A stretch of DNA of 19,184 nt from Zygophlyctis sp. KS116 (Eukaryota > Fungi > Chytridiomycota). Where the stretch lies: positions 1-19,184 of the forward strand of contig BAAFSQ010000189.1 in assembly GCA_054661495.1 (NCBI GenBank), written 5' to 3'. The notes beneath the pieces are model-generated. The model worked only from the letters and a program-made list of their open reading frames with translations, was not told the origin of the DNA and searched no databases. The translations under genes and the position numbers were made by a program. This document shows positions 1-16,046 of the stretch, one piece after another (position 1 is the first letter of the stretch; the number at the start of each line of letters is the position of its first letter).

Positions 1-515
1 AACAATTATCAATAGTTCAATCTTGTCAAAAACCAATGTTTCTTCACTGTAGAAACGCAGCACAAGATTTAATATCTATTTTAAAAGAATATCATGACTA
101 TTGGTCTGAAGGAGTTGTACATTCTTTTGATGGAACTCTTCAAGAAGCTCAAGAATTTATGTCTATGGGATTGTATATTGGTATTAATGGTTGTTCCTTA
201 AAGACTGCTGAAAATCTAGATATTGTATCTCAACTTCCTCTATCAAAGATCATGATAGAGTCTGATGCCCCTTGGTGTGGAATTAAGAAAACTCACGCAT
301 CTTTCCAGCTTAGCCCTTTATTATCTGCTGTTCCATTAGTAAAAAAGGAAAAATTCCTTCTTGGATCAAGAGTCAAGGATCGTAATGAGCCTGCATCTTG
401 CTTAGATATTCTACATGTATTGTCAAAATTATTTCAGAGGCCTTTGGAGGAATTATCTGAAACCATTTATCAGAATACAGTTAAGTGTTTTTTTCCGGCG
501 GGTAACAATCAATAA
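1..515 (+). CDS. TATDN1: TatD-family DNase, eukaryotic TATDN1 type; 5' part lies outside the window
   Basis: Frame is open from base 3 (QLSIVQSCQKPMFLHCR). TatD motifs FLHCR, GVVHSFDG, YIGINGCSLKT, MIESDAPWC and RNEP are present. Stop TAA at 513-515. Confidence 0.93.
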   Translation, partial: QLSIVQSCQKPMFLHCRNAAQDLISILKEYHDYWSEGVVHSFDGTLQEAQEFMSMGLYIGINGCSLKTAENLDIVSQLPLSKIMIESDAPWCGIKKTHASFQLSPLLSAVPLVKKEKFLLGSRVKDRNEPASCLDILHVLSKLFQRPLEELSETIYQNTVKCFFPAGNNQ

Positions 516-516
516 A

Positions 517-1874
517 ATGATTTCTGCATTTTTCATATTTAATGGAAGGGGAGATGTACTGCTTTCTAGAGTTTATCGGCAGGATGTCAAAAGGTCCTTG
601 ACAGATGTATTTAGAGTTCATGTTCTTGCACAAAATATTAAAACTCCAATCTTGACTTTGGGAAGTACTTCTTTTTACTACATTAAACATGAAAACTTAT
701 TCCTTGTCGCCGTTTGCAAATGCAATCCTAATGTTGCATTGGTCTTTGAATTTCTTTATAAAGTGGTGTCGTTGGGCGTCAAGTACTTTAATCGTTTTGA
801 TGAAGATTCAGTAAAGGACAATTTCACTTTTTTGTATGAAATCATGGATGGTAATTTGTTTTAAATTTAACTGAAAGAGATTTGTGATTTTGGATTTCCT
901 CAAAATACAGATTTGGAAGCATTGTCTGCTTCAGTCACGACAGACTATGTAAAAAGCGATACTGTACTTTAATATTTGACTAAATTATAGGCTTCAATAG
1001 TGAAAAAGCTTATTGTACAGGCAACAGGGGTAGTATCTTGGAGAAGACAGGATATTAAGTATCGTAAAAATGAGGTTTTTGTGGATGTCATTGAAAAAGT
1101 AAATTTATTAATGAGTTCAGAGGGTAAATAAACTTAATGTAAAAAGTAGGATCAGTATTAAGATCAGATGTATCTGGTCAAGTAATGATGCGTGCTAATT
1201 TAACTGGAATGCCTGAATGCAAATTTGGACTAAATGATAAACAATTGGTAGACTCTGAAAGAAAGGCCTCAGGACAAGATTCCAATAATAAACTGCTCAT
1301 TGAATTAGATGATTGTCAATTTCATCAATGTGTTAGATTGGGAAACTTTGGAGAAACAAAGAGTATTAATTTTATTCCTCCTGACGGGGAATTTGAACTC
1401 ATGAAATACAGAACCACAGAAAACGTCTCATTACCTTTTAAAGTCAGAGCAATCTTGAATGAAACAAATTCTCGAGTGGAATACAGAGTGGTTTTAAGAG
1501 CATTGTTCCCACCAAAAATATCAGCACAAAGCATTATAGTTAATATTCCAACTCCTACAAACACCTCTGATGCAAAAATATCAATTTCAGGTGGGAAATG
1601 TAAGTATAAAGGGAGCGAAAATTCACTCATTTGGAAAGTCGCTAAAATGCAAGGTGGTCAGGAACTTTCTCTAACGGCGACAGCTGAACTATCTTTAACT
1701 ACTACTAAAAAAACTTGGACACGACCTCCAATTTCTGTTGATTTTCAGGTGATCATGTTCACATCATCAGGTCTGCTTGTAAGATATCTAAGAGTCTTTG
1801 AAAAGTCAAACTATATTCCAATCAAGTGGGTAAGATACATGACAAGAGCTGGATCATATCAAATTAGGATTTAA
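517..1874 (+). CDS. APM4: AP-2 clathrin adaptor complex mu subunit (AP2M1/Apm4 type), 425 aa, 4 exons: 517-850, 878-963, 991-1123, 1150-1874
   Basis: Starts [23 protein letters not shown]. Splicing GT-AG introns 851-877 (27 nt), 964-990 (27) and 1124-1149 (26) restores [71 protein letters not shown] and the C-terminal [19 protein letters not shown] is 1278 nt, a multiple of 3. Confidence 0.95.
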
Positions 1875-1924
1875 AACAACAATTACCATAACACGAGAAT
1901 TTTGAAGATTTTTTGAGCTTAAAA

Positions 1925-2672
<748 letters not shown>

Positions 2673-2678
2673 ATATGA

Positions 2679-4973
2679 TTAGTTTGACTCTTTCTTGATT
2701 CGTTTGAAATGCAGAACAAAGGGTCCGTTATTTTTGAAATAAAAGTACTTTACGGTTGCAATGGACAGCCTTGGTGAGAGTATTTCATTCCCCAAAAATA
2801 TTCTTGTTTCTAAATCTTTTTCGATGGGGATTTTACCATCTATATATTCAGATAATTTGAGCAAACGCATCATTTTGTTGCAATTTAATTGATTATGCCT
2901 TCAAGGTTAATAATCAAATGTTTTACCCTCCTGGCAATGCAGCTGTATTTGATTTTGGATACGGATCAAGAATGAAATTGATTTTTGAAATTTCCCTTTT
3001 AGGTGTAACGCTCTTATGTTTAATATAAATGCATGTACCTGTAGTAGCCAATTAGACAAGAATTCTGGGACCACTTTCTTGAGCTTTTGAACTTCTTCCA
3101 GATCTTCAAGTAGAGCTTTTGGTGAAGAAGAGAACAAAACTAGATAAGTGAATAAATCATCCGAATCTTTAACACTGATTTTTAATTTGACATTAGCTGG
3201 AAGAGATATCCACGGAGTATCAATGGTACTTAAAAAAGGAAATTGATCTAAGAAAACTGTTCTAGTCTAAAATTAGTAAAATTGCACATACATGTGATTT
3301 TGGTGATTTGAATGTATTTCCGTCCAACGATATATCAGCTGAATATATACATGATGTGTTCCCTAACAAAGCTGGAGCATCTAAAGCAGATTTTTTTTCA
3401 GACTTAATATAGCCTAGAAAGAGATAAGTTAATATCCAGGATGCGAGGTTTACTAATAATGAAGACAAAATTCATACTGCGATAATTTTTTTCGTAGTCT
3501 TGACTTAAGTTTGGGATTTCTAAATCATCCAAGTAAGTTTCAGCATCGTAACAGCTACCATCAAATATATGAACAACCAATATCTGTTTATTAAATAAAA
3601 AAGCTTACCCCTGTTTTTATTTCCAGACTGCACCAGTTTGCTACCCACACTTTTGAGTTTAACTGAGTAATTATATCTTCAAAGAGTAGGTTTGATTCAT
3701 ACTTTTTGATGATAGAGCATGCAATTATATCTACTAAAAATTTTGTCTTCTTTGAATTTTCTGTCAGCACATGTCTTTTATTATTAAGCATTACAGCTTT
3801 TATAATTCTCGGGTATCCTTGTACGTAAATCTGTGGCATTTTACCTTTGATTCGCATTTTCGGGCTTATATTTAAAGGTTTCCTTATATCTTTAAAATCG
3901 GTTTGCAAATCCGGTGAAGATGTGCCAGGCTCTGACGTTAAATCTTTATCCACGCGAATATTTAAAGATTGGTTAAAATCGTCTTTTGAGGGGATATCAT
4001 TCCAAGCAGTTAAGTCAAAAGATCCAGTCCATACCAATTCTCCATCTAAGCCATCAAGCGCCATAATCCCGGTAGATTCTTGGCCTAAGCATACAGACTG
4101 ATTATGGTTTCTGCTAGTCTTCCATAAAAAACCTACAAATTAATAAAGTGAACAAACCATTCTTTGTCCCCACCCAAAAAGTTTTCAGATCTGAATCTTT
4201 CGAGACAATTTTCCAGATAGAATCATTATAATGATTTATTGTTTGATACGGTGTAGTAGGAACTGCTAAATCCCAAAAATTGACCATAAAATCAGAACCA
4301 CCAGAAATCAAATAATGCCCATCATCGCTGTAATCAAAAAATTAACAAATACCTTAGTTGAAGTGTTCTAACCATATCATTATGACCATAAAATTCCAAA
4401 ATTTGCTGATTTGATCTGGAATCAAACAATTTGACTGTATTACCAACTGAAGTAGCAGCAGCAATAATCGAGCCAGCGCAAGATATTGCATATACTGAGG
4501 AGTGAGTTATAATTTCGGCTAAAATTACTAAAAACTATCATACATGACATTTGCAAAACTGACAAATCCCAAATACGTATCTTCTTATCTAACCCCGCAG
4601 AAGCAATCATATTTTGAGTATTTAGAGCTGATAACGCAGTCACCGAATCATTATGATTTCCAAGATAATGATGCTGTAGATTTTTAGTAATTTTAACTGT
4701 TGAATCTGCGGAACAGGAGACCACTTTTCCATTAATTAGAAATTCTTACACGAATCGTTTATATGCAAAAGATCATTCACCCAATCTGAATGAATACTGG
4801 AAGAGTTTAAAATTTCTGTTTCATTAAATTCATAAATCTTCCCATCTCTCCCTTTGATTTTAAAAATATAAATTACCACCAACCCATACTCTATCATTGC
4901 AAAGTTTAAGACTTTTGACTCCTGTAAATGTCTCTGGCTCTAAAAAAGAATAAGAAATTCTATATTTTTTCAT
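2679..4973 (-). CDS. WDR48: WDR48/UAF1 (Duf1/Bun107-like) deubiquitinase activator: WD40 repeats plus C-terminal DUF3337-type region, 679 aa, 11 exons
   Basis: ATG at 4973. Ten GT-AG introns: 4852-4876, 4724-4749, 4519-4543, 4328-4352, 4133-4157, 3584-3608, 3453-3477, 3267-3291, 3013-3038, 2899-2926 (25-28 nt). Splicing gives one 2040-nt ORF with RISYS..GVKSL..GGRDG, HSDWVND, GHNDMVRTL, ANWCSLEIKTGILVV, RINLASWILTYLF, LNCNKMMRLLKL and LSIATVK, all matching the WDR48/UAF1 family pattern. Confidence 0.88.
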
Positions 4974-5053
4974 AATCCAACTCAAATCCTGTAAACGTTA
5001 ATCTCAGGTCAAGGCTCTTGAGTCAAGAAATATCGTATTTATATATTCAAATA

Positions 5054-5695
5054 TTATCTCCCAGTTTGCAACTGCAATTGCCTTTCCAACAATGTGATCT
5101 CTTCCAAACTCTTTGCTTGACTTAGAGCTAATTTCAATTTTTCTATAGTTTCCTTTGAAGGTCCTGATTTCTCGACAGTCGTCTTTACTATTTCGTCTTT
5201 TAGACTAGAGTCTTGGAACATTATTGAGGAGACTTTTCTTTCTTCCATTGTAACTTTTTTATAGTCCAAAATTTTTAAAGATTCCAAATTATTAATCATA
5301 TATTCTCTGTAATGTAACAATTTAGAGACAGGATTTCCCAAAAGAATAAGAACCTCTAGTTTCTTAAAATGTGAAAGTTGTACATCTCCTAGTTCTTTTA
5401 AATCATTATTGGTGAGAACTAGAGTTTTTAAGTTGTGCAATTTCAAACCAAGAGAAGGATCAATTTTAGAAAGATTGTTATTTGAGACAAAAAGAGTTTT
5501 AAGTCTTGGTAAAAGTGGAAAGTTTTCCAATTTTTTTAATTCATTATTTGAAAGATCTATAGTGTCAAACTGGTTCTTTGTAAGGATTAAATTTTCAATT
5601 TCTGCTATTTTTAGACTTTTGAGAGATAGTTCTCGATCACCTAGCGGATTGAGTCCAGAAGGAGAATCATGTATGAGATCATAATCTATTTTCAT
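5054..5695 (-). CDS. LEA1: U2 snRNP A' (leucine-rich repeat protein, Lea1/SNRPA1), 213 aa, intronless
   Basis: N-terminus LNPLGDRELSLKSLKIAEIENL..FDTIDLSNNELKKLENFPLLPRLKTL, LRR cap GNPV..HYREYMI..LKILDYKKV, and C-terminal helix ALSQAKSLEEITLLERQL. Confidence 0.93.
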   Translation of the reverse strand: MKIDYDLIHDSPSGLNPLGDRELSLKSLKIAEIENLILTKNQFDTIDLSNNELKKLENFPLLPRLKTLFVSNNNLSKIDPSLGLKLHNLKTLVLTNNDLKELGDVQLSHFKKLEVLILLGNPVSKLLHYREYMINNLESLKILDYKKVTMEERKVSSIMFQDSSLKDEIVKTTVEKSGPSKETIEKLKLALSQAKSLEEITLLERQLQLQTGR

Positions 5696-6330
5696 TTTAG
5701 AGCTCAGGGTTGAGCCTGAACCTATTGTGTCTTTGGAACCAAGATCATAATTGTCAACAAATGGATTTTAAGTAAATTGCAAATCCTATTTTTACTATTC
5801 TTTGCAGAGCTTGTAGACAAAAATACATATATCAAAAAGAAACTAATTTTTAGTTTCAAATTTTTTGTAAATTGAAACGGTAGCTGCAAATCAATATTCT
5901 ATTAATAGATGCAATTTCGCCACTCAGATCATCACGAATTTCTTTTAGAGCTTACCAATTGCAATTTCAGAATCATTATATTAGATTATTCACGTTTTAA
6001 TTGTTCGAAGAAGACAGTTTTGCCCCGAGAAATATACGTTTAGATAAACTAAATTATAGCTATGAGTTCAAAATATAATAAAGCAAAGATTAAAGTAATC
6101 AAGAAAAATACAAAATGCTTCACTTTTATGCAATGTCTGCTATGGTTAACATGGTAGAGGCGGAAGATGAAGGAGGTGGGGAAGGGCCGCGTTTCAATGA
6201 GACGGTGGGTTCTGTCTAAAAATAAGGTTCAAAAACCTAAAGGCAATTCGGCACTGATAGTGATCCTATAAAGTCTGTCTCTTAAAGACCAATGGAATCA
6301 AAAATCAAATTCTTTCATACAATATCTTTC

Positions 6331-6866
6331 TGTAATAAGGAGGAGTAGGTTAGAATCTTTCTAGATTTAGGAAGAAAAACTAGGATTCATCACATAAAAG
6401 TTAGTTGATATTGTAATTGCCTAATAAATAAATTACACTAAATTGAATATTTTTTTTCGACGGGCAAACATAACAGCAGCTCAAAAATAGAGATCCCTCA
6501 TCATGATTATATATATGGTACATTTATACAATGAACAAATCAGCTATGAGCCCATTCACTAAATGATGGCAGGATGGGTCTAGGGGCAAGGTTGATCCCA
6601 CGTATGGTTAGTTTGGTAGTTAATCAATTAAGCCACGGCGGAGTTTATTTAAATAAGCTTTTTAATTTGTTCACGCTAGCACGGGGTTTAAACTAGAAGG
6701 GTCAAAAAAATGAAAACAACACAAGAAAAAAGGTAATATAACTATAACATTAGGATCAAATTAAATCCCTTGAAAAAAAGGATTAAAAAGATTTAAAACC
6801 TAGACTCTGATTATCACAACATGAATTAGCCCCAGACTAGGCTATTCCTAGACCTAGTATACGACA
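6331..6866 (-). repeat. Candidate 3' LTR of the adjacent Gypsy element
   Basis: On the minus strand it begins TGTCGTAT at 6866, directly after a polypurine tract. The distal end (…TTATTACA at 6331) is a guess because no second LTR is present in the window. Confidence 0.45.
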
Positions 6867-6878
6867 TCACCCCCCTCC
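6867..6878 (-). other. Polypurine tract of an LTR retrotransposon
   Basis: Minus strand reads GGAGGGGGGTGA followed immediately by TG, about 60 nt downstream of the integrase stop at 6941. Confidence 0.75.
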
Positions 6879-6940
6879 AGCTCTTCATTAGCTCTAATGA
6901 TACAGTTCAATAAAAAAACCCGTGGTAAAAAAGCAATCTG

Positions 6941-8165
6941 TCATTTTGACGTGAGTTTGAATCGAACTTTGAGTGGGTTCTTTTTAGATCTCTTGGATGG
7001 GCTCTCGTATTTTCTTATGAGTTCATCGGATACGAAATCTCTCTTATGGATTACTTGAGTATCCTTGTGATTCTTGAATTTAACAACATAATGGTCTGGT
7101 CCTTGTTTGACGACTATCTTTCGAATTTTGTGATACTGAGATTCGTCGTTTTCATAGAATGGCAAGCTCGTTAATTTGAGCTGTGACGGAGACCGAGTAT
7201 ATTCACGCCCATCTTTGCCCTTAATTAGATAAGCACCTCCATTGTTTCTTCAAATTACCATGAACGGATCTTCAAATCGTGGTTCCGTCTTGGCTGATCT
7301 TGTATCATTGCGAGCCATAACTATCGCTCCTTTTTTGAAGTTGTCCTTTGAGATTATTAGATGACTTTTAACATATTTTGTGGCATCTTTTTGACAATTA
7401 TTCTTAATTTTCTCTCTAATGGCTGGATACAGGAAAGAAGTGATGAATTCTAATCTTTTCTCAATAATCTGCTGCTTCTCTTCTTCCGTTTTGTCCAACG
7501 CTCTTTTTTCGTCTCTGGTCCAATCTTTTGGAGATCTGGCAAATACAAGAGAATAAGGAGCCGATCCGTGGCGTAAAGTCACCTTTATATGTGTAAAGTA
7601 TTGAACAGATTGATAATGTTGATCCCACAATTGATCTTTACCTTCTAGGAGTTTATAAATGGACAATTGTATAGTTCCAATCCATCTTTCAGCATCACCA
7701 TTAGCTTGAGGATGGTACGCTGTAATCGTCCTTTTTTCTACCTGAGCAATTTTAAATATTTCATCGATTATTGAGTTACAGAATTCCTTTCCATTGTCAG
7801 ATTGAAGTATTTTTGGGAATCCGAGAAGCAGGAAGACCTCTACCAAGTCTTTGGCGACTTCCTTTTTTTTCGTCTTCAAAGCCTTTAAGATAACGAAACG
7901 GGTAAAAATATCAGGGTTATTCCATAGATATAATCATGAAATTTTTGTAATGAGAATATAATAGCCAGTAACTCCCTTTGAGTTGCACCATAATCGAGCA
8001 GCAAATGAGATATATTTCTGACTTTCACTGTCCTTTTGAAAAAGCACCCCAGCTATTCCCGATTGAGACGCATCAGTTGCAATATAAAATGGTTTACTGA
8101 AATTGGGGAAGGATAATATCATGTTACTTGCTAATATCCCTTTTACTTTATCAAATATCATCTAT
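6941..8165 (-). mobile_element. Ty3/Gypsy LTR retrotransposon pol relic: RT-RNase H fragment joined by deletion to integrase, GPY/F module and a degenerate chromodomain
   Basis: LSFPNFSKPFYIATDASQSGIAGVLFQ and frameshifted YGATQRELLAIIFSLQKFHDYIYG (RNase H). The sequence then jumps to DIFTRFVILKAL..GFPKILQSDNGKEF..TAYHPQANGDAER (integrase core), EDPFMVI*RNNGGAYLI (in-frame TGA at 7250-7252) and a chromo-like tail. Confidence 0.9.
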
Positions 8166-8179
8166 CCTTTTTTTACCAG

Positions 8180-10280
8180 GATAATGTAGTCTCACCTCAA
8201 AGGGCCATTGCTTTTATAGGTCAAGAAGTTTTATTCCAGCCTCGAAAGAAAAAAGGTCGAAAGAGTGCAGAGCAAAAAAAAATCGAACAAGAAGCTGCAA
8301 TGCTTAGAAGGCAACGGATAAGAGGTATTTCAGATAACCTTAATGATTTAGATACACATAATGACATTACCTTAGAGTCCCTGGAATCTTTGGATTTTTC
8401 AAAAGTTGATTGTGGCTATAAAACTGTTACAGGTTATGTTAGCGCTATATGTGACTTATTTACATTTCAATCACAATATCAAAACAATAGCCATGGCCAT
8501 CCAAGGACAAAGGAGATGAATAAACTCATAGAAGCAGTTAAAAAAATTTTGTTGAAAGAAAATGATGAAGGATTTCATGATAGGTTGAAAGATACGGCGC
8601 TAGATACAGTCACCTTCACCCAATATATGGAAAATGCTTCGTTTCTTGGCTTTAATGATAAAAATGAAGCTGTTTGTATAGGATATCGCCTAGACGCGCT
8701 ATTGATGTATAGTACCATGGGACGTTCTCAAATTACAAGAAACCTGCGTCTTTCAGAAATCGGTGTTGAGTATGTGTCATCAAACGAACGTCAGGATAAA
8801 AAATGATTCACTGACATATCAAGAGCAGCGAAAGTATGTAATAGCTTCCTTTGAACATTTTGATTTGAGTTGCAGTAAAAAAACACATATTGGTAGGGAT
8901 GTTGCTGTCTCAGTTGGAACAAAAGCTGGGTTATCCGAAAATTCCATGAAAAGACATGGTATTTTTAAATTAAATTTTTTTAAAATATAGGATTTTGGAA
9001 GTTGGACTCGTTTTCTGTAGCATTCCAATCAAGGACACTGCCGTACGACGTAATACGCGTACTTGCAGGGTTTGGAGCAGAGGAATTGTCATACCGCCTA
9101 CTAAGAGACTTTGTTGACCCCCCTAAGGACTTGGAAAAGTTGATATTCCCTTGGGTGGGAGATTCAATTACTCTCATTCAAGATTTACTTAAAAGAAGGG
9201 TAATCCAGAGTGAGCACTCTGGCCTTGGATTCTTGAAGCTATTGCTGCTGCTGCGACGTGTTTTTTTACAGGACGCAGCAGCATTTTATTTGAATTCTGA
9301 TCTTTCGAAATATGAAGTCTCTCAGCTGCCCTTGTTTAAAACGGCCGAATTTGTTGACTTTCAGAAAAAAATTACAGATTGCATTACTGATCCATCTATT
9401 CAAATGCTCTACAAAGCTGGAACCGAAACTAAACTCAATCAAGTCAAAGAAACGCAGGCTGCTCAAGAATCTTTTCAAGAAAAAGGATTTAAAAGGTTGA
9501 ATGAGAAAATGGACGAAGTATTGGCCACAATAGGTTTTCTTACATTTTTAACTAAAATTAGAGGGAGGTAATAAAAAAATGAGAAGAATGCAAAAGAGAC
9601 TCCATAATGTGTATGTGAAAACCTTGGAAGCTGTTCATGAAGTAGCTAATTCGTCTTTATCCGATGTCTCTGATACTGATTCATCGGAGCCTGCTGTAGT
9701 TGTCGCCAGGAAGTCTAAAAAACAAATCGTCGAAAAAGATGCCGGTTTACAAATGAATGTTCAAAAATTGTTGTTTGAAGAGGCAGAGGCAACTCCCAAA
9801 TATCGCATGGCATCATATAAAGTTGTTTCGACCGTTTTGCTAGTCTATAAGGAATGGTATGAAGGTTGGGACGGTCGTCCCAGCATAGTTGAATTAATTG
9901 AAAAATATAACTTGATGTGGAGATATAAGCAGGATGAGAAAAATTTCTCAAGAAGAGGAAAGATGATACGTGAAATCCAGAAATTGGTAAAAGAAGGAAT
10001 TGGAATTGAATCAGCTATTTGGAATTTGGAAACAAGAAGGGGCAAAATAGCTGTTTCTTCATTCGCTGATTCATTGTGTTGTGAAATAAATAATTGATTA
10101 AAATTAATTTTAAGTTTTTATAAGTTTCAATTCAATCATCATCATCATGATTTGAAATCGAATTAGCATCTGAATCTGAATTGTAAGTGAGGTTGCATTG
10201 AATTGCATGACCATCCCATTATTAAAGTTTTCAATTTTACCTCGGGTAAAATTCGTGACCGGAAAAAAAGTACTTGATTA
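8180..10280 (+). mobile_element. CryptonF tyrosine-recombinase DNA transposon (Crypton 1), 5'-truncated and internally deleted; coding part 8180-10097 with Ndc10-II-like YR domain and C-terminal GCR1_C domain
   Basis: GYKTVTGYVSAICDLF, MGRSQITRNLRLSEI, SKKTHIGR, RHG|FWKLD (intron 8959-8990, 32 nt), LPYDVIRVLAGF, PPKDLEKLIFPW, LRRVFLQDAA. Intron 9534-9561 (28 nt) joins to a GCR1_C pattern, YRM..TVLLVYKEWYEGWDGRPSIVELIEKY..WR..FSRR. A frameshifting deletion lies near 8790. Confidence 0.9.
10233..10253. repeat. 21-bp palindromic box near the 3' end of Crypton 1
   Basis: AATTTTACC-TCG-GGTAAAATT has perfect 9-bp arms and is 19/21 identical to 15199-15219. Confidence 0.85.
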
Positions 10281-11264
10281 CTAAGTTTTATGTTGGTAGC
10301 ATTAAAACTCGAAGAGAAAAAAATCTTTACTAGGCCTTGGGCAGGAAAAACGGATCGGTACCAGACAATTTTTTTAAGCGGAGGCTAGGTTTGAAACTCA
10401 ATTACTCAAAACGAAGGCTATGCCTCTAGTGCAATAGCAATTTCAAAGTTGTTGACATCTTTACTCTGTGTTCAAGAGTCTGTGCACACTCTCGTTCTAG
10501 CCTTTAGCTTTTCTGTTTGTAGTTAAGTAAAAACTACTATAATAATTGGAAAAGAGGAATTATCTGACAAATGAATTGATCCATTATAAGTTCTTATTGT
10601 TAAGGTCATAGAAAAAGATTCTAGCCGGAGTCAAATGATTGATTCTGTTGACCATTCTTCAAATAAGACCACTCTTTCACATTCGTTTTCATTTGATGAA
10701 TTTTCATTATATCTTTAATATTTAGTATCGCATGCTGGATCTGGTCCTGCTCTAACTGAGTCAGCTCATTCCACGATTTGTTGGTTCTCCCTTATTTCAT
10801 TTTTTATTTATATTCAACCTCCGTATATTTCTTAAGGGGTCCAAAAGTTCCCACGACTATGCTGTTCATTCAGATCGTTTTCGCTATGTAGCACTGTTTG
10901 TATGCGGGATTGGCAGTTATTGTTGAAACTAAGTCTTGAGGCACTGAACAGTTATGTGAGTGTTAAACGGTTGGTCCTGTAGCAGCTGTACAAAGCCATA
11001 AATAAACCTGAAACTCAAATTGGATGCAACTTTATTTGTTTTCTTTTATAATCAGATTATCTAATTTTAAGTAATCGCTATTGTTGGGTGCAGGTTTCTG
11101 AGCTCTTAAGCCTTGATAAACCCTCATATAATTGTCCATGAGTAAAAACAGGCTCCGGCAAATAAAGCCAAACACTTGTGACTTATGGATTTTCAGCTCT
11201 ACTGCCTTTAACTATAACTGGACGTATTTGTCTAACCCTTTTTTACATGCACAATTGTCCGACG

Positions 11265-11750
11265 TTGGTCCAATTTTAAATCTAGATTGCGCAGTTCTAC
11301 CACCCATTATTAAGCCTGAAGCGATGCCATAAGATGCAACAGGTAATGCTTTTTTAACTTGGTTGCGCTAGATTTAAACAAGGAAAAATAAACATGATTT
11401 CAAATAGATTTATCTCCTAAACGCGCTATGCGAGTAAGCTGATTTTTAGTATGCTCATCTGAGATGAGACAAATCTTGACTTCAGTATGTTTATTGTACC
11501 TGAATCGAAATTTTGTTTTTTCATTTAACAAATACCTATTATTCCAAAGTCACTTCCTCTAAAAAGCTCTTTTGGCATACCAATATACGAAACAGGGAAT
11601 AAATCTAGATTCATTATACTTGATAAATTCTGTTTCATTGTAGAACGGTTCAACTGCAGTATATTGAAGACAACGACAGCATATTTTATTTAATTTTCCT
11701 GTAGCACTTACATGGTCAATGGGCTTTTGGCATTTTGAGCAGAAAATATA
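11265..11750 (-). mobile_element. Helitron-type relic: Cys4 zinc-finger fragment and Pif1 helicase fragment
   Basis: Minus strand ~11355-11267 reads KKALPVASYGIASGLIMGGRTAQSRFKIGP, matching the Helitron Pif1 consensus VASSGIAA.LL.GGRTAHSRFKIP. 11750-11664 reads FCSKCQ..TGKLNKICCRCL. Surrounding frames are full of stops. Confidence 0.65.
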
Positions 11751-12939
11751 TCACGCTAGGGTTACAAATTCATTTGAAATTTAGTCAAGTCTTTATAAAT
11801 TCTGAATAAGTTGAGTCGGGCTCTATCTCGAGCGGTTTTTCATATCTCCTGCATACTCTTTTCTCTTATTTCATTTCTAAGTTTTTGTTGGAGGATGAGA
11901 GTATTGATTCTACTTCTGCAAATGGAAGCATTTCACATAATTGTGAAAGTTTGATTATTTGATGAGATTCTTTTAAAAGTTTAGACAGAATTACATCCGT
12001 ATTAGTAATTTCATCCTTCTTAAAATATATTATCTTTTGAACAAGAGAAAACCCTAGGTCTCAGAACGCGACAAAGCCTTTTTGGACCAGGTGTTACAAG
12101 AATATCTGCATGATTAACGAACTCAGAACTGAATTTACATTTAAGGTTTTGATCGCGCATACAAAATTCCATTTGTGTTCTTTATCTCTAGCAGCTCTAA
12201 TCAACGGGTTACCTATGTATCAGACCACTTTCTTGCCCAATTATTCTGCTTTTTCAACTTTAACCCAAACCTACATTCCACAACAAAACGATAATTCTGC
12301 TCTAACCCTCCGCCTGATACTGACTTCGTTCAACGGCTGCTCTTCTAGCCAGTCCTAACTCCTCAAAAGTACGCGCTTTGAATTCACCACGTTCCTCAAG
12401 CATCGCCAATTCATTTAAAGGAATCATTGTGGACCGAGGTGGAGGTGGTTTAGGTGGGGTTAGTTCCTCTAAATTTTGCAGTTAGATAAATTTTAAAGAG
12501 TTCAAATTGATCTTTCAAATGCTAATCAGTTTTATTTTATTGATCATAGAACATTCAAGAAGTGGCTTATTTAGACAAGAAGTGTCTCGGGTTTTCTTTA
12601 GAAAATAATTTATTTTCTTCATGTCAATCCTGTTATAAATTGGGATTAGGGATATATTGATGTATATTGATGATGGAAAGAACATGGTTGTCGGTGTAAC
12701 TTCATTGACTAAAGGAAAACATACTGTGAATTTCTTAATTTCATTCATGGTTTTCCGTTGATGAAAGGGAACAAAGTCCAGTTTCAGTATGTGAAAAGAA
12801 GTTGTCGGGTTAGATGGTTATGATGATGTATCTAGTTTGATTGGTGGGAAAGAGCTTGACAAACCGCTCAAGTTAGATGAAATAGTTTATGTCAAATAAG
12901 TAGACATTTATCCTACTTACAGCCGGCTATGAGGATCGA

Positions 12940-13390
12940 TAATAGATTGGCGAATGCAAGAGTTTATAGCGAGCTGGATGCTTCTTGGTGAATCCAGTGG
13001 CACCAGAAGATATTGAAAATCTAACATTCAACTCGATCATACGAGTCCTTGGTAACACCGTTTGGATTAAAGAATTCACCTAGTCTGATTTTTAAATCGG
13101 TTATATTGATGTATATTGATTTACTCTACCAATTTGGATGATTATTTAAAGCGTCTAGAAATCATAGCAAAACTTTTCGACGAACCTGCAGATTAAGGAT
13201 TAGCGAGTTTTTAAAGAAGTCTGTTCTGTACTTGGGTATTAAGTTGAAAATTGAAAAGCAAAAATTGATCCAGAGAATGTTTAATTGTTAGATCAGGGCC
13301 CGTACCGACTAATTTGTCGGCTGTGCGGTCATATCTGGGGTTTTCAGGGCATTATAGAAAATTTCAGACCGTGGAAACCCCTTTATTGCA
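12940..13390 (+). mobile_element. Heavily decayed Ty3/Gypsy reverse transcriptase fragment
   Basis: Collinear RT motifs across frameshifts: LANARVYSELDA, YESLVTPFGLKNSP (PFG at 13058), SVLYLG, IDPENV, PVPTNLSAVRSYLGFSGHYRKF (from 13299), KPLY. Confidence 0.8.
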
Positions 13391-13391
13391 T

Positions 13392-13498
13392 ATAAAAAAA
13401 ATCTCCTCAGTAAAATTTGATTATATCTATACATCCAGAGTCTATAATACGATTTTTAAATCGTCATGAGCAAAATCATGATGGCTTAATCGAGCGAT
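13392..13498 (+). pseudogene. 5' piece of a DUF3987/YfjI-like putative helicase/ATPase gene, split by Crypton 2
   Basis: Reads SPQ*NLIISIHPESIIRFLNRHEQNHDGLIER and joins in frame to 15336 onward when 13499-15335 is removed. The family call rests on resemblance to the ..QP..DG(L/F)..RFL motif. Confidence 0.5.
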
Positions 13499-15335
13499 AT
13501 AAGAATATTACTTTACAGATAAAAAATTTTAAAACATGTGAGTCCGGACTTGGTCCGCTTGCAAATTTAGTGTTAATACAAAGAATGGTTTTGATAACCT
13601 ACTAAATTTCAGTTAGAACTGCTGCATCTTGCAGGATAACAGTACGAAAATATTCTATCATTTCAAAAATATTCTTCCCTATTCTGTAAGATACGTCATT
13701 ATTTACCTGCAATATCATTTGAATCGTGAGATTTTTTAAAAATTTCTTTTTGTTCGACAAATAACGAAAGAATTTTTTTTTCTATCAGGTGAGAATCCAG
13801 AGAGCACACGAACAGCCTCCCAGGGAATAGCATTATGCGCATACGCGACATTTCTAGATTTAGTTGCCCAGTGTCCCTGCTTGTCCACAGATGCTGCACT
13901 GGCACCTAAATGTTCAGCCTACACCTGTAAGAAACAATAAAACCAACCTCTGCTGCAATTTTTCTACCTGATTGAGTGACAACAGAAGTAGCGATGTCTG
14001 CTTCTAAAAATTTTTTCTTAATGTTTACGTACTGCTGGCGGTAGGACAAACTATGAGTATCTTATTTCCCCTTTAAAACAAAGATATTATACCTGAAAAT
14101 TATTAGAATTAAAAATATACCAGTTTATCTTAGCAGAAAAATCTGGGGCCAATCTTTCAAATCTAAAAAAAATAAAATGCCAAAGCTCCAATTGCACACA
14201 GAGAAGCATCTTTGTGCCTAATGATGAATGCATTGAAGCTCACATTAGTGTTGTGGTCTGCTGGACATTACCGAATTGATTTTTTTAGAACGTCTCCAAA
14301 CAGTTCTAAGCACATAAGCCCCCTTCACTCCCTCCGAATTAAAAAATTTCAGCCCAATTTCCGATATCTTCAAATTTCTGATTTGATCCCCTCGGCTGCC
14401 AAAGCTGCTGAGAGTAAAAAGTCAGCGCGGTGCTTTAAACCAACCTAGAGTAACAAACTCAATAAATACCTCAGTATTATCCTCCCAAAAACGATGACTA
14501 ATTGATTCAAATGATTGGGGAGTCACCATGTCTATCATGGTGTTTTTTCCTCTGTCCACCAATTGAAGTTCCTCCTCATTCATTTCTTCAATTTTCTTCA
14601 ACTTCAGCATTGTTGAAACTCGCTCTGGACGAGTCCACGGTGGTCCGGGGTAAGAGTTATTTGGACCTGCTGACAACTACCTATCAATTTTTGAATTTTA
14701 CCGAGTGCTGATCAGTCCACAAATTGACAATTGCATTCGCATATTGACATAAAGAAGAATAGCCAATCTTATTTTTTGTTAGATGAATCATCTGCTTGTT
14801 CTCTAATTCATGATGTGTCACCATGATTCTTCTTTCGTCTAGCACCTCTTTTGTACGTAGTTCTATCCTTCATCTCTTCTAAAAACAGAACCATTTGGTT
14901 TTCTGTCACATTACAATATTCATATCCTTTTCCTGCTGACCATTCCTATCATTAAAATTATTAATAAATATACAATGAATTCTAATGCCTTGGGGTCATA
15001 CACTCTCTTGTTAGCTGAAGGAGCAAGTGATATCTTTCTTAATTGGACCGCTTTGATAGCGGCTTGCTCTTGTAGAAAAAGAGATAATTGATTTTCTCTG
15101 ATACTTTGCATTTGAGAAGTTGCTTAGTTAGGATTATTCAATTTTTAAAAAGGAAAATTTTCCTGTGATGCGTAAGTTTTATCTTAGGTTGATACGTGAA
15201 TTTTATCTCAGGTAAAATTGCCCTTTGAAATTAATATCCCGGCTAAAATTATAGACCAGTCTGCGGACCGCTCACTTTGAGACGTAAAATTTTGCGCGTT
15301 TTTTGGGACCGGAAAAAATATACTTTATAGTAGAT
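13499..15335 (-). mobile_element. CryptonF tyrosine-recombinase transposon (Crypton 2) with both termini retained; YR pseudogene from ATG 15111 to ~13570, six tiny introns, several frameshifts, no GCR1_C
   Basis: Introns 14946-14973 (28), 14677-14701 (25), 14445-14469 (25), 14093-14120 (28), 13919-13947 (29), 13679-13706 (28). Motifs: YDPKALEFI|EWS..VTENQMVLFL, IGYSSLCQYANAIVNLW, DRGKNTMID, RGDQIRNLKISEI, RHKDASLCAIGALAFY, PDFS..W|Y, LSYRQQ, TQSGR, GHWATKSRNVAY, VRVLSGF, FRTVILQDAA. The boundaries are set by the in-frame rejoining of the interrupted gene, with GAT at both junctions. Confidence 0.88.
15175..15250. repeat. Array of three related 21-bp boxes upstream of the Crypton 2 recombinase ATG
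   Basis: 15199-15219 AATTTTATCTCAGGTAAAATT; degenerate copies at 15175-15195 (AGTTTTATCTTAGGTTGATAC) and 15230-15250 (ATTAATATCCCGGCTAAAATT). Confidence 0.65.
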
Positions 15336-16046
15336 TTTTAATAACAACATTTAATGTCGAATTTCGATCGATGTCAGAAATTAGAAGAGATTTTTTTAAG
15401 ACAGACATTTTGCGAGGTATTTTATTATACTGTTATTATATATCTATTTTATTTTATTTAATAAGGCACAGATATCCTCAAAAAAGACAGTTATCATTCC
15501 GGGAGGAGAGGCTCAAAAAATGTTTGATCAAATTTATGATGACATAAGAATTTTAAGAAAAACCTACTCAAAATTACCTACGGTAGTTCTCAGAGCTTCA
15601 AGTCTTAAAAAAAGTAAAACTGTTCATTTTAAATAATAGGAATTACAAAAAGAGGATCTATTAACTAGCTCTATATCATCAAAAACCTTTTTGAAAGCAT
15701 TTAAATTGGCTCATTTTTACATGCAACAAAGGTAAATTTATAATTGTAACTATTTAGAGTAATTTTAAGTTCGGGAAAATTGAATGAATCAAATATAACG
15801 CTCTCCTCGACTGTGAATGAGGACTTGATCTGTCCATTCAGCACCGTCATATTTATGGCTTAAAGAATACTATACTTGAATGGAAAAAAATTGGCAATTT
15901 AAGATGTTATAAGAGCAAAAAGATCAGAAAATTCAAAAATTCAAGGGATTTTCGAGCTGATTGTTCATGCCGGATTTGGAGAAATTTGCACCATTTGTAG
16001 CCTAATCAATCGAAATCGCGATGAAAATATTCTTAAATCAACTTAA
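15336..16046 (+). pseudogene. 3' piece of the DUF3987/YfjI-like pseudogene, with host-style tiny introns
   Basis: FLITTFNVEF..PGGEAQKMFDQIYDDI..YSKLPTVVLRASSL..ISSKTFLKAFKLAHFYMQQR, with introns 15614-15639 and 15732-15757 (26 nt each) and probably a third ending at 15465. Frameshifts and stops are present, and the end coordinate is approximate. Confidence 0.5.

Follow-up and report, generated by a model that had tools for sequence, protein, structure and literature searches.

We analyzed a 19,184-nucleotide stretch of the Zygophlyctis sp. KS116 genome (GenBank contig BAAFSQ010000189.1; below, the window), which carries two Crypton transposons pointing in opposite directions, Crypton 1 on the plus strand and Crypton 2 on the minus strand. 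Judged by their domains and ends, both are probably decayed CryptonF-type tyrosine recombinase (YR) transposons with two different ends and direct repeats of 6–7 bp, and their families are largely ordinary Cryptons with well-defined ends. A preliminary description of the window had interpreted a bipartite motif 3' of Crypton 1 as the right end of this element, equivalent to an inverted left end of Crypton 2. Multi-copy comparison suggests another origin: the motif (10233–10277) is likely the orphan, inverted 5' end of a decayed Crypton-2-like element, lying beside a Crypton 1 that is truncated on both sides.

Two Crypton families in the genome

The genome, with coding pieces searched exon by exon, contains 22 matches to GCR1_C and 32 to NDC10_II, and its Cryptons comprise at least two well-sampled families that are about 30–40% alike in protein; Crypton 1 belongs to family 1 and Crypton 2 to family 2. 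In all, we put the number of Crypton loci at ~25–30. Domains and ends point to the CryptonF type: Crypton 1 has the NDC10_II match of a CryptonF-type recombinase, and next to the 4–6 bp terminal direct repeats of that class we found 6 bp in family 1 and 7 bp in Crypton 2, which we took to agree. Classical terminal inverted repeats (TIRs) and long terminal repeats are absent, family 1 having no more than a subterminal inverted repeat that is short and offset, and no reverse transcriptase (RT) or DDE transposase was seen within the Crypton pieces scanned (part of the internal open reading frame [ORF] pieces), flanking RT and integrase sequences lying outside the elements. Cryptons have been described as bearing only short direct repeats (PMC3212892, PMC13465315); the preliminary description had stated the same rule, and it holds here, as the termini are not inverted copies of each other and carry the 7-bp and 6-bp repeats.

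Two rare motifs mark Crypton ends

The two motif pairs on which the preliminary description was built are present and rare genome-wide. Box A (10233–10253 versus 15199–15219) is 19/21 identical between its two sites and box B (10257–10278 versus 15307–15328) 19/22 identical, with exact coordinates in both cases:

10233–10253, strand not assigned: box A, palindromic, 19/21 to the family-2 box
15199–15219, strand not assigned: box A, palindromic, with the probable ATG (15111) about 90 bp downstream
10257–10277, minus strand: terminal arm B with a core-like heptamer (10271–10277), 18/21 to the Crypton 2 5' terminus
15307–15327, minus strand: 5' terminal arm B and core of Crypton 2

Scanning of the 12.7-Mb genome for both motifs, as had been proposed, yielded few sites: five for the box A pattern versus none in controls, and seven for the box B pattern, with two mismatches allowed, versus three in controls. 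A generic repeat finder recovered box B alone, its output being swamped by AT-rich chance pairs. The box A pattern is located at +57 in family-1 5' ends and between +105 and +110 in those of family 2; none of the mapped 3' termini of either family has it. Boxes A and B are separated by 87, 87 and 82 nt in three family-2 copies and by 3 nt at 10233. Both boxes are features of Crypton ends, and box B is a true terminus.

The arrangement behind Crypton 1 is not a misassembly, because a single 5036-bp unitig (9968–15003) spans the 10219–10278 junction without differences in three runs, two of which may represent the source sample. Unitigs covering 15043–15600 showed about 1/3 to 1/2 of the depth of this unitig in three runs; heterozygosity or amplification bias could account for the lower depth, and contig depth does not equal copy number.

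Empty sites define the ends of Crypton 2

Crypton 2 is bounded by the 7-bp direct repeat TACTTTA. Joining its flanks over one copy of the repeat produced an exon-intron-exon stretch that is collinear with uninterrupted host-gene paralogs, i.e. empty sites, on two other contigs (C484 and C131). Because these paralogs fix the boundaries, box B is the true 5' terminus of Crypton 2, and the element conforms to the established pattern of short direct repeats at Crypton ends. The element and its surroundings are organized as follows:

13425–13508, plus strand: left flank of Crypton 2, which inserted into a multicopy host gene; the flank holds an exon and an interrupted intron of this gene and resumes at 15328
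13509–15327, minus strand: Crypton 2 (family 2), a non-autonomous copy with two intact ends, a frameshift and an internal deletion (no GCR1_C)
13509–13515, plus strand: terminal direct repeat TACTTTA, 3' copy
15321–15327, plus strand: terminal direct repeat TACTTTA, 5' copy
13539–13556, minus strand: GC-rich 3' subterminal box, also on C507, diverged on C109, with weak inverted likeness to 15254–15275
15254–15275, minus strand: GC-rich 5' subterminal box, conserved in C131 and in the C109 mini-element
15166–15189, plus strand: 24-bp tandem duplication of 15190–15213 (20/24), absent from C131 and C109

In the alignment of family-2 copies (C189, C131, C109, C601, C755, C267, C286), similarity ends right after box B, and on C189, C131, C601 and C267 box B lies 5' of Crypton coding sequence in the same orientation. 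A 5'-only family-2 fragment is found on C131. At C286:6573 and C131:11921, B-type termini stand as orphans, with Crypton coding sequence undetected nearby; such orphans are expected decay products. They could also be quoted in favor of the motifs being a separate miniature inverted-repeat transposable element (MITE) unrelated to Cryptons, a view that is extremely improbable given that box B ends, to the base, where Crypton 2 ends and that on four contigs it is followed by Crypton coding sequence. For the site at 15307, the base-exact Crypton 2 terminus refutes it.

A 17-mer at the 3' end of Crypton 2 (13509) recurs exactly only once in the genome, at C109:27062, where it opens a 180-bp element (C109:27062–27241; L043) that is closed by box B. 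This sequence is a non-autonomous mini-Crypton: its two ends are both of family-2 type, and its direct repeat matches at 6/7 positions. It bears out the expectation of non-autonomous elements defined by the motifs.

Pieces of Crypton 2 match Crypton 1 and other Crypton copies in tblastn searches. GCR1_C has been deleted from Crypton 2 and is retained in its relative on C109, and the W-x8-Y motif occurs in Crypton 2 as well as in the family-1 copies C403 and C647. YRs usually carry an HxxR motif. Family 1 keeps HxxR, whereas family 2 has QxxR (QSGR, QTGR; window 13909–14061 and C267:6400–6720), which is probably a family trait rather than a product of decay, since it is present in two independent copies.

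An imperfect inverted similarity between the two ends of Crypton 2 had been noted as well. The end pair (15254 and 13539) requires three gaps to align; the outcome depends on the parameters. With strict gap settings, the 130-bp ends show no significant inverted similarity (p 0.18; 0.22), and the same strict test on the C109 mini-element was likewise not significant. With lenient gaps, these ends rank in the top 0.3% of real-DNA tiles, although, within 172 kb, several unrelated sites match as well as the GC-rich box does on its own. What persists of the proposal is a weak hint of an inverted repeat. Moreover, part of what had appeared as a box array upstream of the Crypton 2 ATG is the 24-bp tandem duplication, which is private to this copy.

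Crypton 1 lacks both family-1 ends

Crypton 1 is a decayed remnant with the following features:

8164–10219, plus strand: family-1 remnant of Crypton 1, truncated on either side and with a loss of about 225 bp relative to C403
8804–8806: premature stop
8984–9352, plus strand: C-terminal part of the tyrosine recombinase (Pfam NDC10_II)
9023–9025: Phe at the position of the catalytic Tyr
9825–10040, plus strand: GCR1_C domain (E 1e-14)

The closest copy, C403, is 90% identical to Crypton 1 over 8164–10077 and 10174–10219 and then diverges, such that the two sequences part at 10219, before the motif begins at 10233. Crypton 1 also has an internal deletion. Five copies (C403, C647, C735, C754, C162) share a 3' end that closes in TTTATTCACTAAATA, and three others have had their 3' ends cut or replaced (C378, C267, C64). 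The family-1 3' end pattern has 12 matches in the genome and none in controls, and the 5' end pattern has eight genomic sites; none of the 12 and none of the eight lie on the contig of Crypton 1, which therefore lacks both family ends. On the 5' side, a Ty3-like RNase H fragment directly abuts the truncated element at 8161–8164, a deletion junction.

In complete family-1 copies, a 6-bp direct repeat is invariant at the 3' end, and at the 5' end its first base varies; in C403, C647 and C162, 5–6 of the 6 bp match. A search for relatives by protein words gave three, one of them a locus with DNA (L059:399–3050, from another metagenome), and a metagenome scan led to the same contig. With both family-1 ends conserved and 57% protein identity, this locus is apparently a complete family-1 Crypton. 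Between L059 and C647, two positions in the inverted arms have changed together at both ends.

The reading of the motif as the true right end of Crypton 1, with boxes A and B together marking right ends and inverted left ends, draws on its position 160 bp after the Crypton 1 stop codon, on its outward orientation and on the likeness of 10254–10266 to the family-1 3' arm (11/13) and to the 3' arm of a third family on C131 (13/14). However, the five family-1 copies and L059 end in other conserved sequence with a core of its own, and the 90% identical sibling C403 is devoid of the motif. Moreover, in register, 10257–10277 matches the family-1 3' ends at 8–9 of 21 positions versus 18 of 21 for the Crypton 2 5' end. 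Nor do the boxes bracket Cryptons in inverted orientation: Crypton 2 and the C109 mini-element have them at the 5' end only, neither box was found at the 3' end of Crypton 2, and family-1 3' ends lack box A. The preliminary description had itself named a multi-copy alignment placing the ends elsewhere as the observation that would count against it, and for family-1 3' ends this is what the alignment shows. The alignment thus largely refutes the right-end reading, which we regard as improbable.

The motif behind Crypton 1 resembles family-2 5' ends

Two features make up the region behind Crypton 1:

10220–10277, minus strand: probable orphan compact 5' end of a Crypton-2-like element, absent from the sibling C403
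10270–10320, plus strand: 5' leader fragment of a long interspersed nuclear element (LINE; C380, two more matches on C873), likely target sequence

Read on the minus strand, 10257–10277 lines up in register with the 5' termini of family 2, and in both cases 8 nt separate the core from CCGG. In local alignments, the motif (10233–10277) is significantly similar to family-2 5' ends (p 0.001) versus p 0.17–0.20 for family-1 3' ends. From 10270 on, the window matches the leader of a LINE on C380 (ORF1 and endonuclease-RT), and C873 has two further matches. In the four bases left of the core, the window and C380 differ; the LINE leader therefore seems to have been interrupted at this point. An element arm followed by a target-derived core is the pattern expected of a 5' integration junction. 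Across copies, the 3' core copy is nearly fixed and the 5' core copy varies at its outer bases, a comparison indicating that the former is element-derived and the latter target-derived.

Several observations weigh against an orphan family-2 5' end. The compact 3-nt spacing between boxes A and B is unique in the assembly, which calls for either a deletion of ~84 bp or a subfamily that has so far escaped notice. Neither the body nor the 3' end of the postulated Crypton-2-like element was found, and left of 10220 there was no family-2 3' end or coding remnant. Only four bases of C380 are available left of the core. The 13-mer at 10254–10266 has the 11/13 likeness given above to the beginning of the family-1 3' arm, in a pattern built from the family-1 3' arm sequences themselves; the probable source of this likeness is a single ancestral arm motif that served both ends. 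Finally, no circle or empty-site joint was found in the contigs of four runs, contigs being prone to drop rare forms.

The 22-nt motif at 10257 shares its final 8 letters with the LINE leader. Together with other deletion junctions at the locus, such as the Ty3-like fragment abutting 8164, this would fit a patchwork, in which a Crypton 1 3' arm, cut after its first 13 bases, was fused by deletion to the LINE leader and the box B match is partly due to chance. Such a patchwork does not explain the adjoining box A, 19/21 identical to that of family 2, and it requires the leader to supply a core-like TACTT at exactly the family-2 distance, for which we roughly estimate a chance below 1%; we consider it unlikely. 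A hybrid containing a shortened family-1 3' end was rejected, as identity is about 60% at best versus 90% in the rest of the element.

Alternatively, family-2-type ends could have captured Crypton 1 or been invaded by it, creating a composite unit that moved Crypton 1 as cargo. Family-1 and family-2 elements are indeed nested on C267 and clustered on C109, C131 and C378, and a mini-element with both ends exists. Yet neither a 3' end nor a coding remnant of family 2 was found left of Crypton 1, and the arrangement occurs in a single copy; we regard a composite as very unlikely. An orphan 5' end of a Crypton-2-like element thus remains our preferred reading of 10233–10277.

A candidate layout of Crypton ends

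The 5' termini of families 1 and 2 are homologous, each consisting of a core, a T run and then CMGG. In addition, the family-1 3' arm recurs in inverted form near position +79, counted from the 5' end (C403, 14/15, p 0.01; C647, 18/19, p 0.002). The repeat is not significant in C162, and in L059 it is visible by eye and parameter-dependent in the test. These alignments support a subterminal inverted repeat of 15–19 bp in family 1. The att-like (attachment site-like) architecture envisaged in the preliminary description therefore survives as a plausible layout that is only partly shown, in the form of this repeat and the homologous 5' termini, and not as a shared signature of boxes A and B.

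In the Goodwin model, as cited in PMC3212892 and PMC9977147, the YR would excise the element by recombining the two short cores; at the junction of the resulting circle, a single core would lie between the 3' and 5' arms, and the circle would integrate at an AT-rich, core-like site. Box B represents the 5' terminal arm and box A a palindrome of 5' subterminal regions only. WTTTTAT half-sites in box A and in the termini are putative YR-binding sites, and a YR bound to box A could repress the promoter of its own element, whose ATG follows the box at a distance of about 90 bp. GC-rich GAC(C/T)-type subterminal repeats may serve as accessory sites for GCR1_C, a domain that yeast Gcr1, Hot1, Msn1 and Ndc10 have taken from Cryptons (PMC3212892); binding sites of the Hot1/Gcr1 type are short GC-containing words (PMC11267847), and a general YR site layout is given in PMC3212892. 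At the locus itself, a Crypton-2-like element would have integrated on the minus strand into the LINE leader, and deletions would then have removed the body of that element and ~170 bp from the end of Crypton 1, so that the remnants became neighbors.

Modeled circle junctions yielded a perfect 10-bp inverted repeat around 5 bp for C403; elsewhere, the palindromes span 6, 5, 3, 4 and 4 bp and are not significant. An att-like layout of the ends, as YR chemistry predicts, is plausible. More speculatively, and with considerable doubt on our part, CryptonF elements might follow an att-like grammar, with a 5' arm and palindrome shared across families, inverted half-sites that come together over the core at the circle junction alone and family-specific GCR1_C repeats, and with cross-family action giving rise to chimeras like 10219–10277. 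If this were true, shared 5' arms could let the recombinase of one family act on the end of the other.

Crypton ends have been described as hard to define, and we found no paper on Crypton subterminal boxes or protein-binding sites in a search that mostly did not extend to subscription papers and Repbase entries. The base-exact ends, the cores, the 5' palindrome and the 180-bp mini-element provide substrates for testing end recognition by a YR with GCR1_C, the mini-element on C109 being a minimal substrate for assays. The value of the result lies in a testable end map rather than in a new element type, shared inverted termini not having been upheld.

Genomic setting

The genome of the window is fungus-like, with tiny introns. 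From 7250 to about 16000, the window is a pile of transposon remnants, including a Ty3-like integrase/RNase H fragment, Crypton 1, a PIF1 helicase piece, RT remnants and Crypton 2. Between the two Cryptons, a degenerate, PIF1-helicase-containing remnant on the minus strand (11035–12481) is probably Helitron-like. C380 contains two tandem, apparently intact LINE-type elements (25–4463 and 4836–7823); window fragments resemble both their leader (10270–10320) and the stretch between them (13375–13425). Within the nested family-1/family-2 Cryptons on C267, there is a 311-bp perfect inverted duplication (5122–5432 and 6538–6848). Further Crypton families on C131 (9806–10975) and C378 (1330–3900) have 3'-side arm motifs like the family-1 3' arm. 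The copies on C873, C293, C360 and C926, like some others, are known by position only.

Comparison with known systems

Attachment sites of prokaryotic YRs such as lambda Int and Tn916 Int comprise a core with inverted half-sites at the circle junction and accessory arm sites. Family 1 hints at the same arrangement of inverted half-sites around a core plus accessory sites; unlike in these prokaryotic sites, only one of four family-1 copies has a perfect palindrome at the junction, and family 2 has none.

Starships, too, are YR elements that carry short direct repeats and sometimes short TIRs, but they are giant cargo carriers with DUF3435 captains, whereas the elements described here are 1.8–2.8 kb long, bear NDC10_II/GCR1_C and have no cargo (Gluck-Thaler and Vogan, 2024; PMC11162782). 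CryptonF-1_cRei of Chlamydomonas shares the fixed 3' and variable 5' repeat copy with our elements; it is active and has a GC-rich CACCG core, while the copies here are dead and have AT-rich cores (Lopez-Cortegano, 2023; PMC9977147).

In organization, the elements resemble CryptonF as described by Kojima and Jurka (2011; PMC3212892), with a YR and a C-terminal GCR1_C, short direct repeats and no classical TIRs. The 6-bp repeat of family 1 conforms to that account, and non-autonomous derivatives are known for other Crypton groups (PMC3212892). Family 2 departs from it in its 7-bp repeat and in having QxxR for HxxR. Moreover, subterminal boxes, a 5' arm shared between families and a subterminal inverted repeat, absent from that account, are all seen here.

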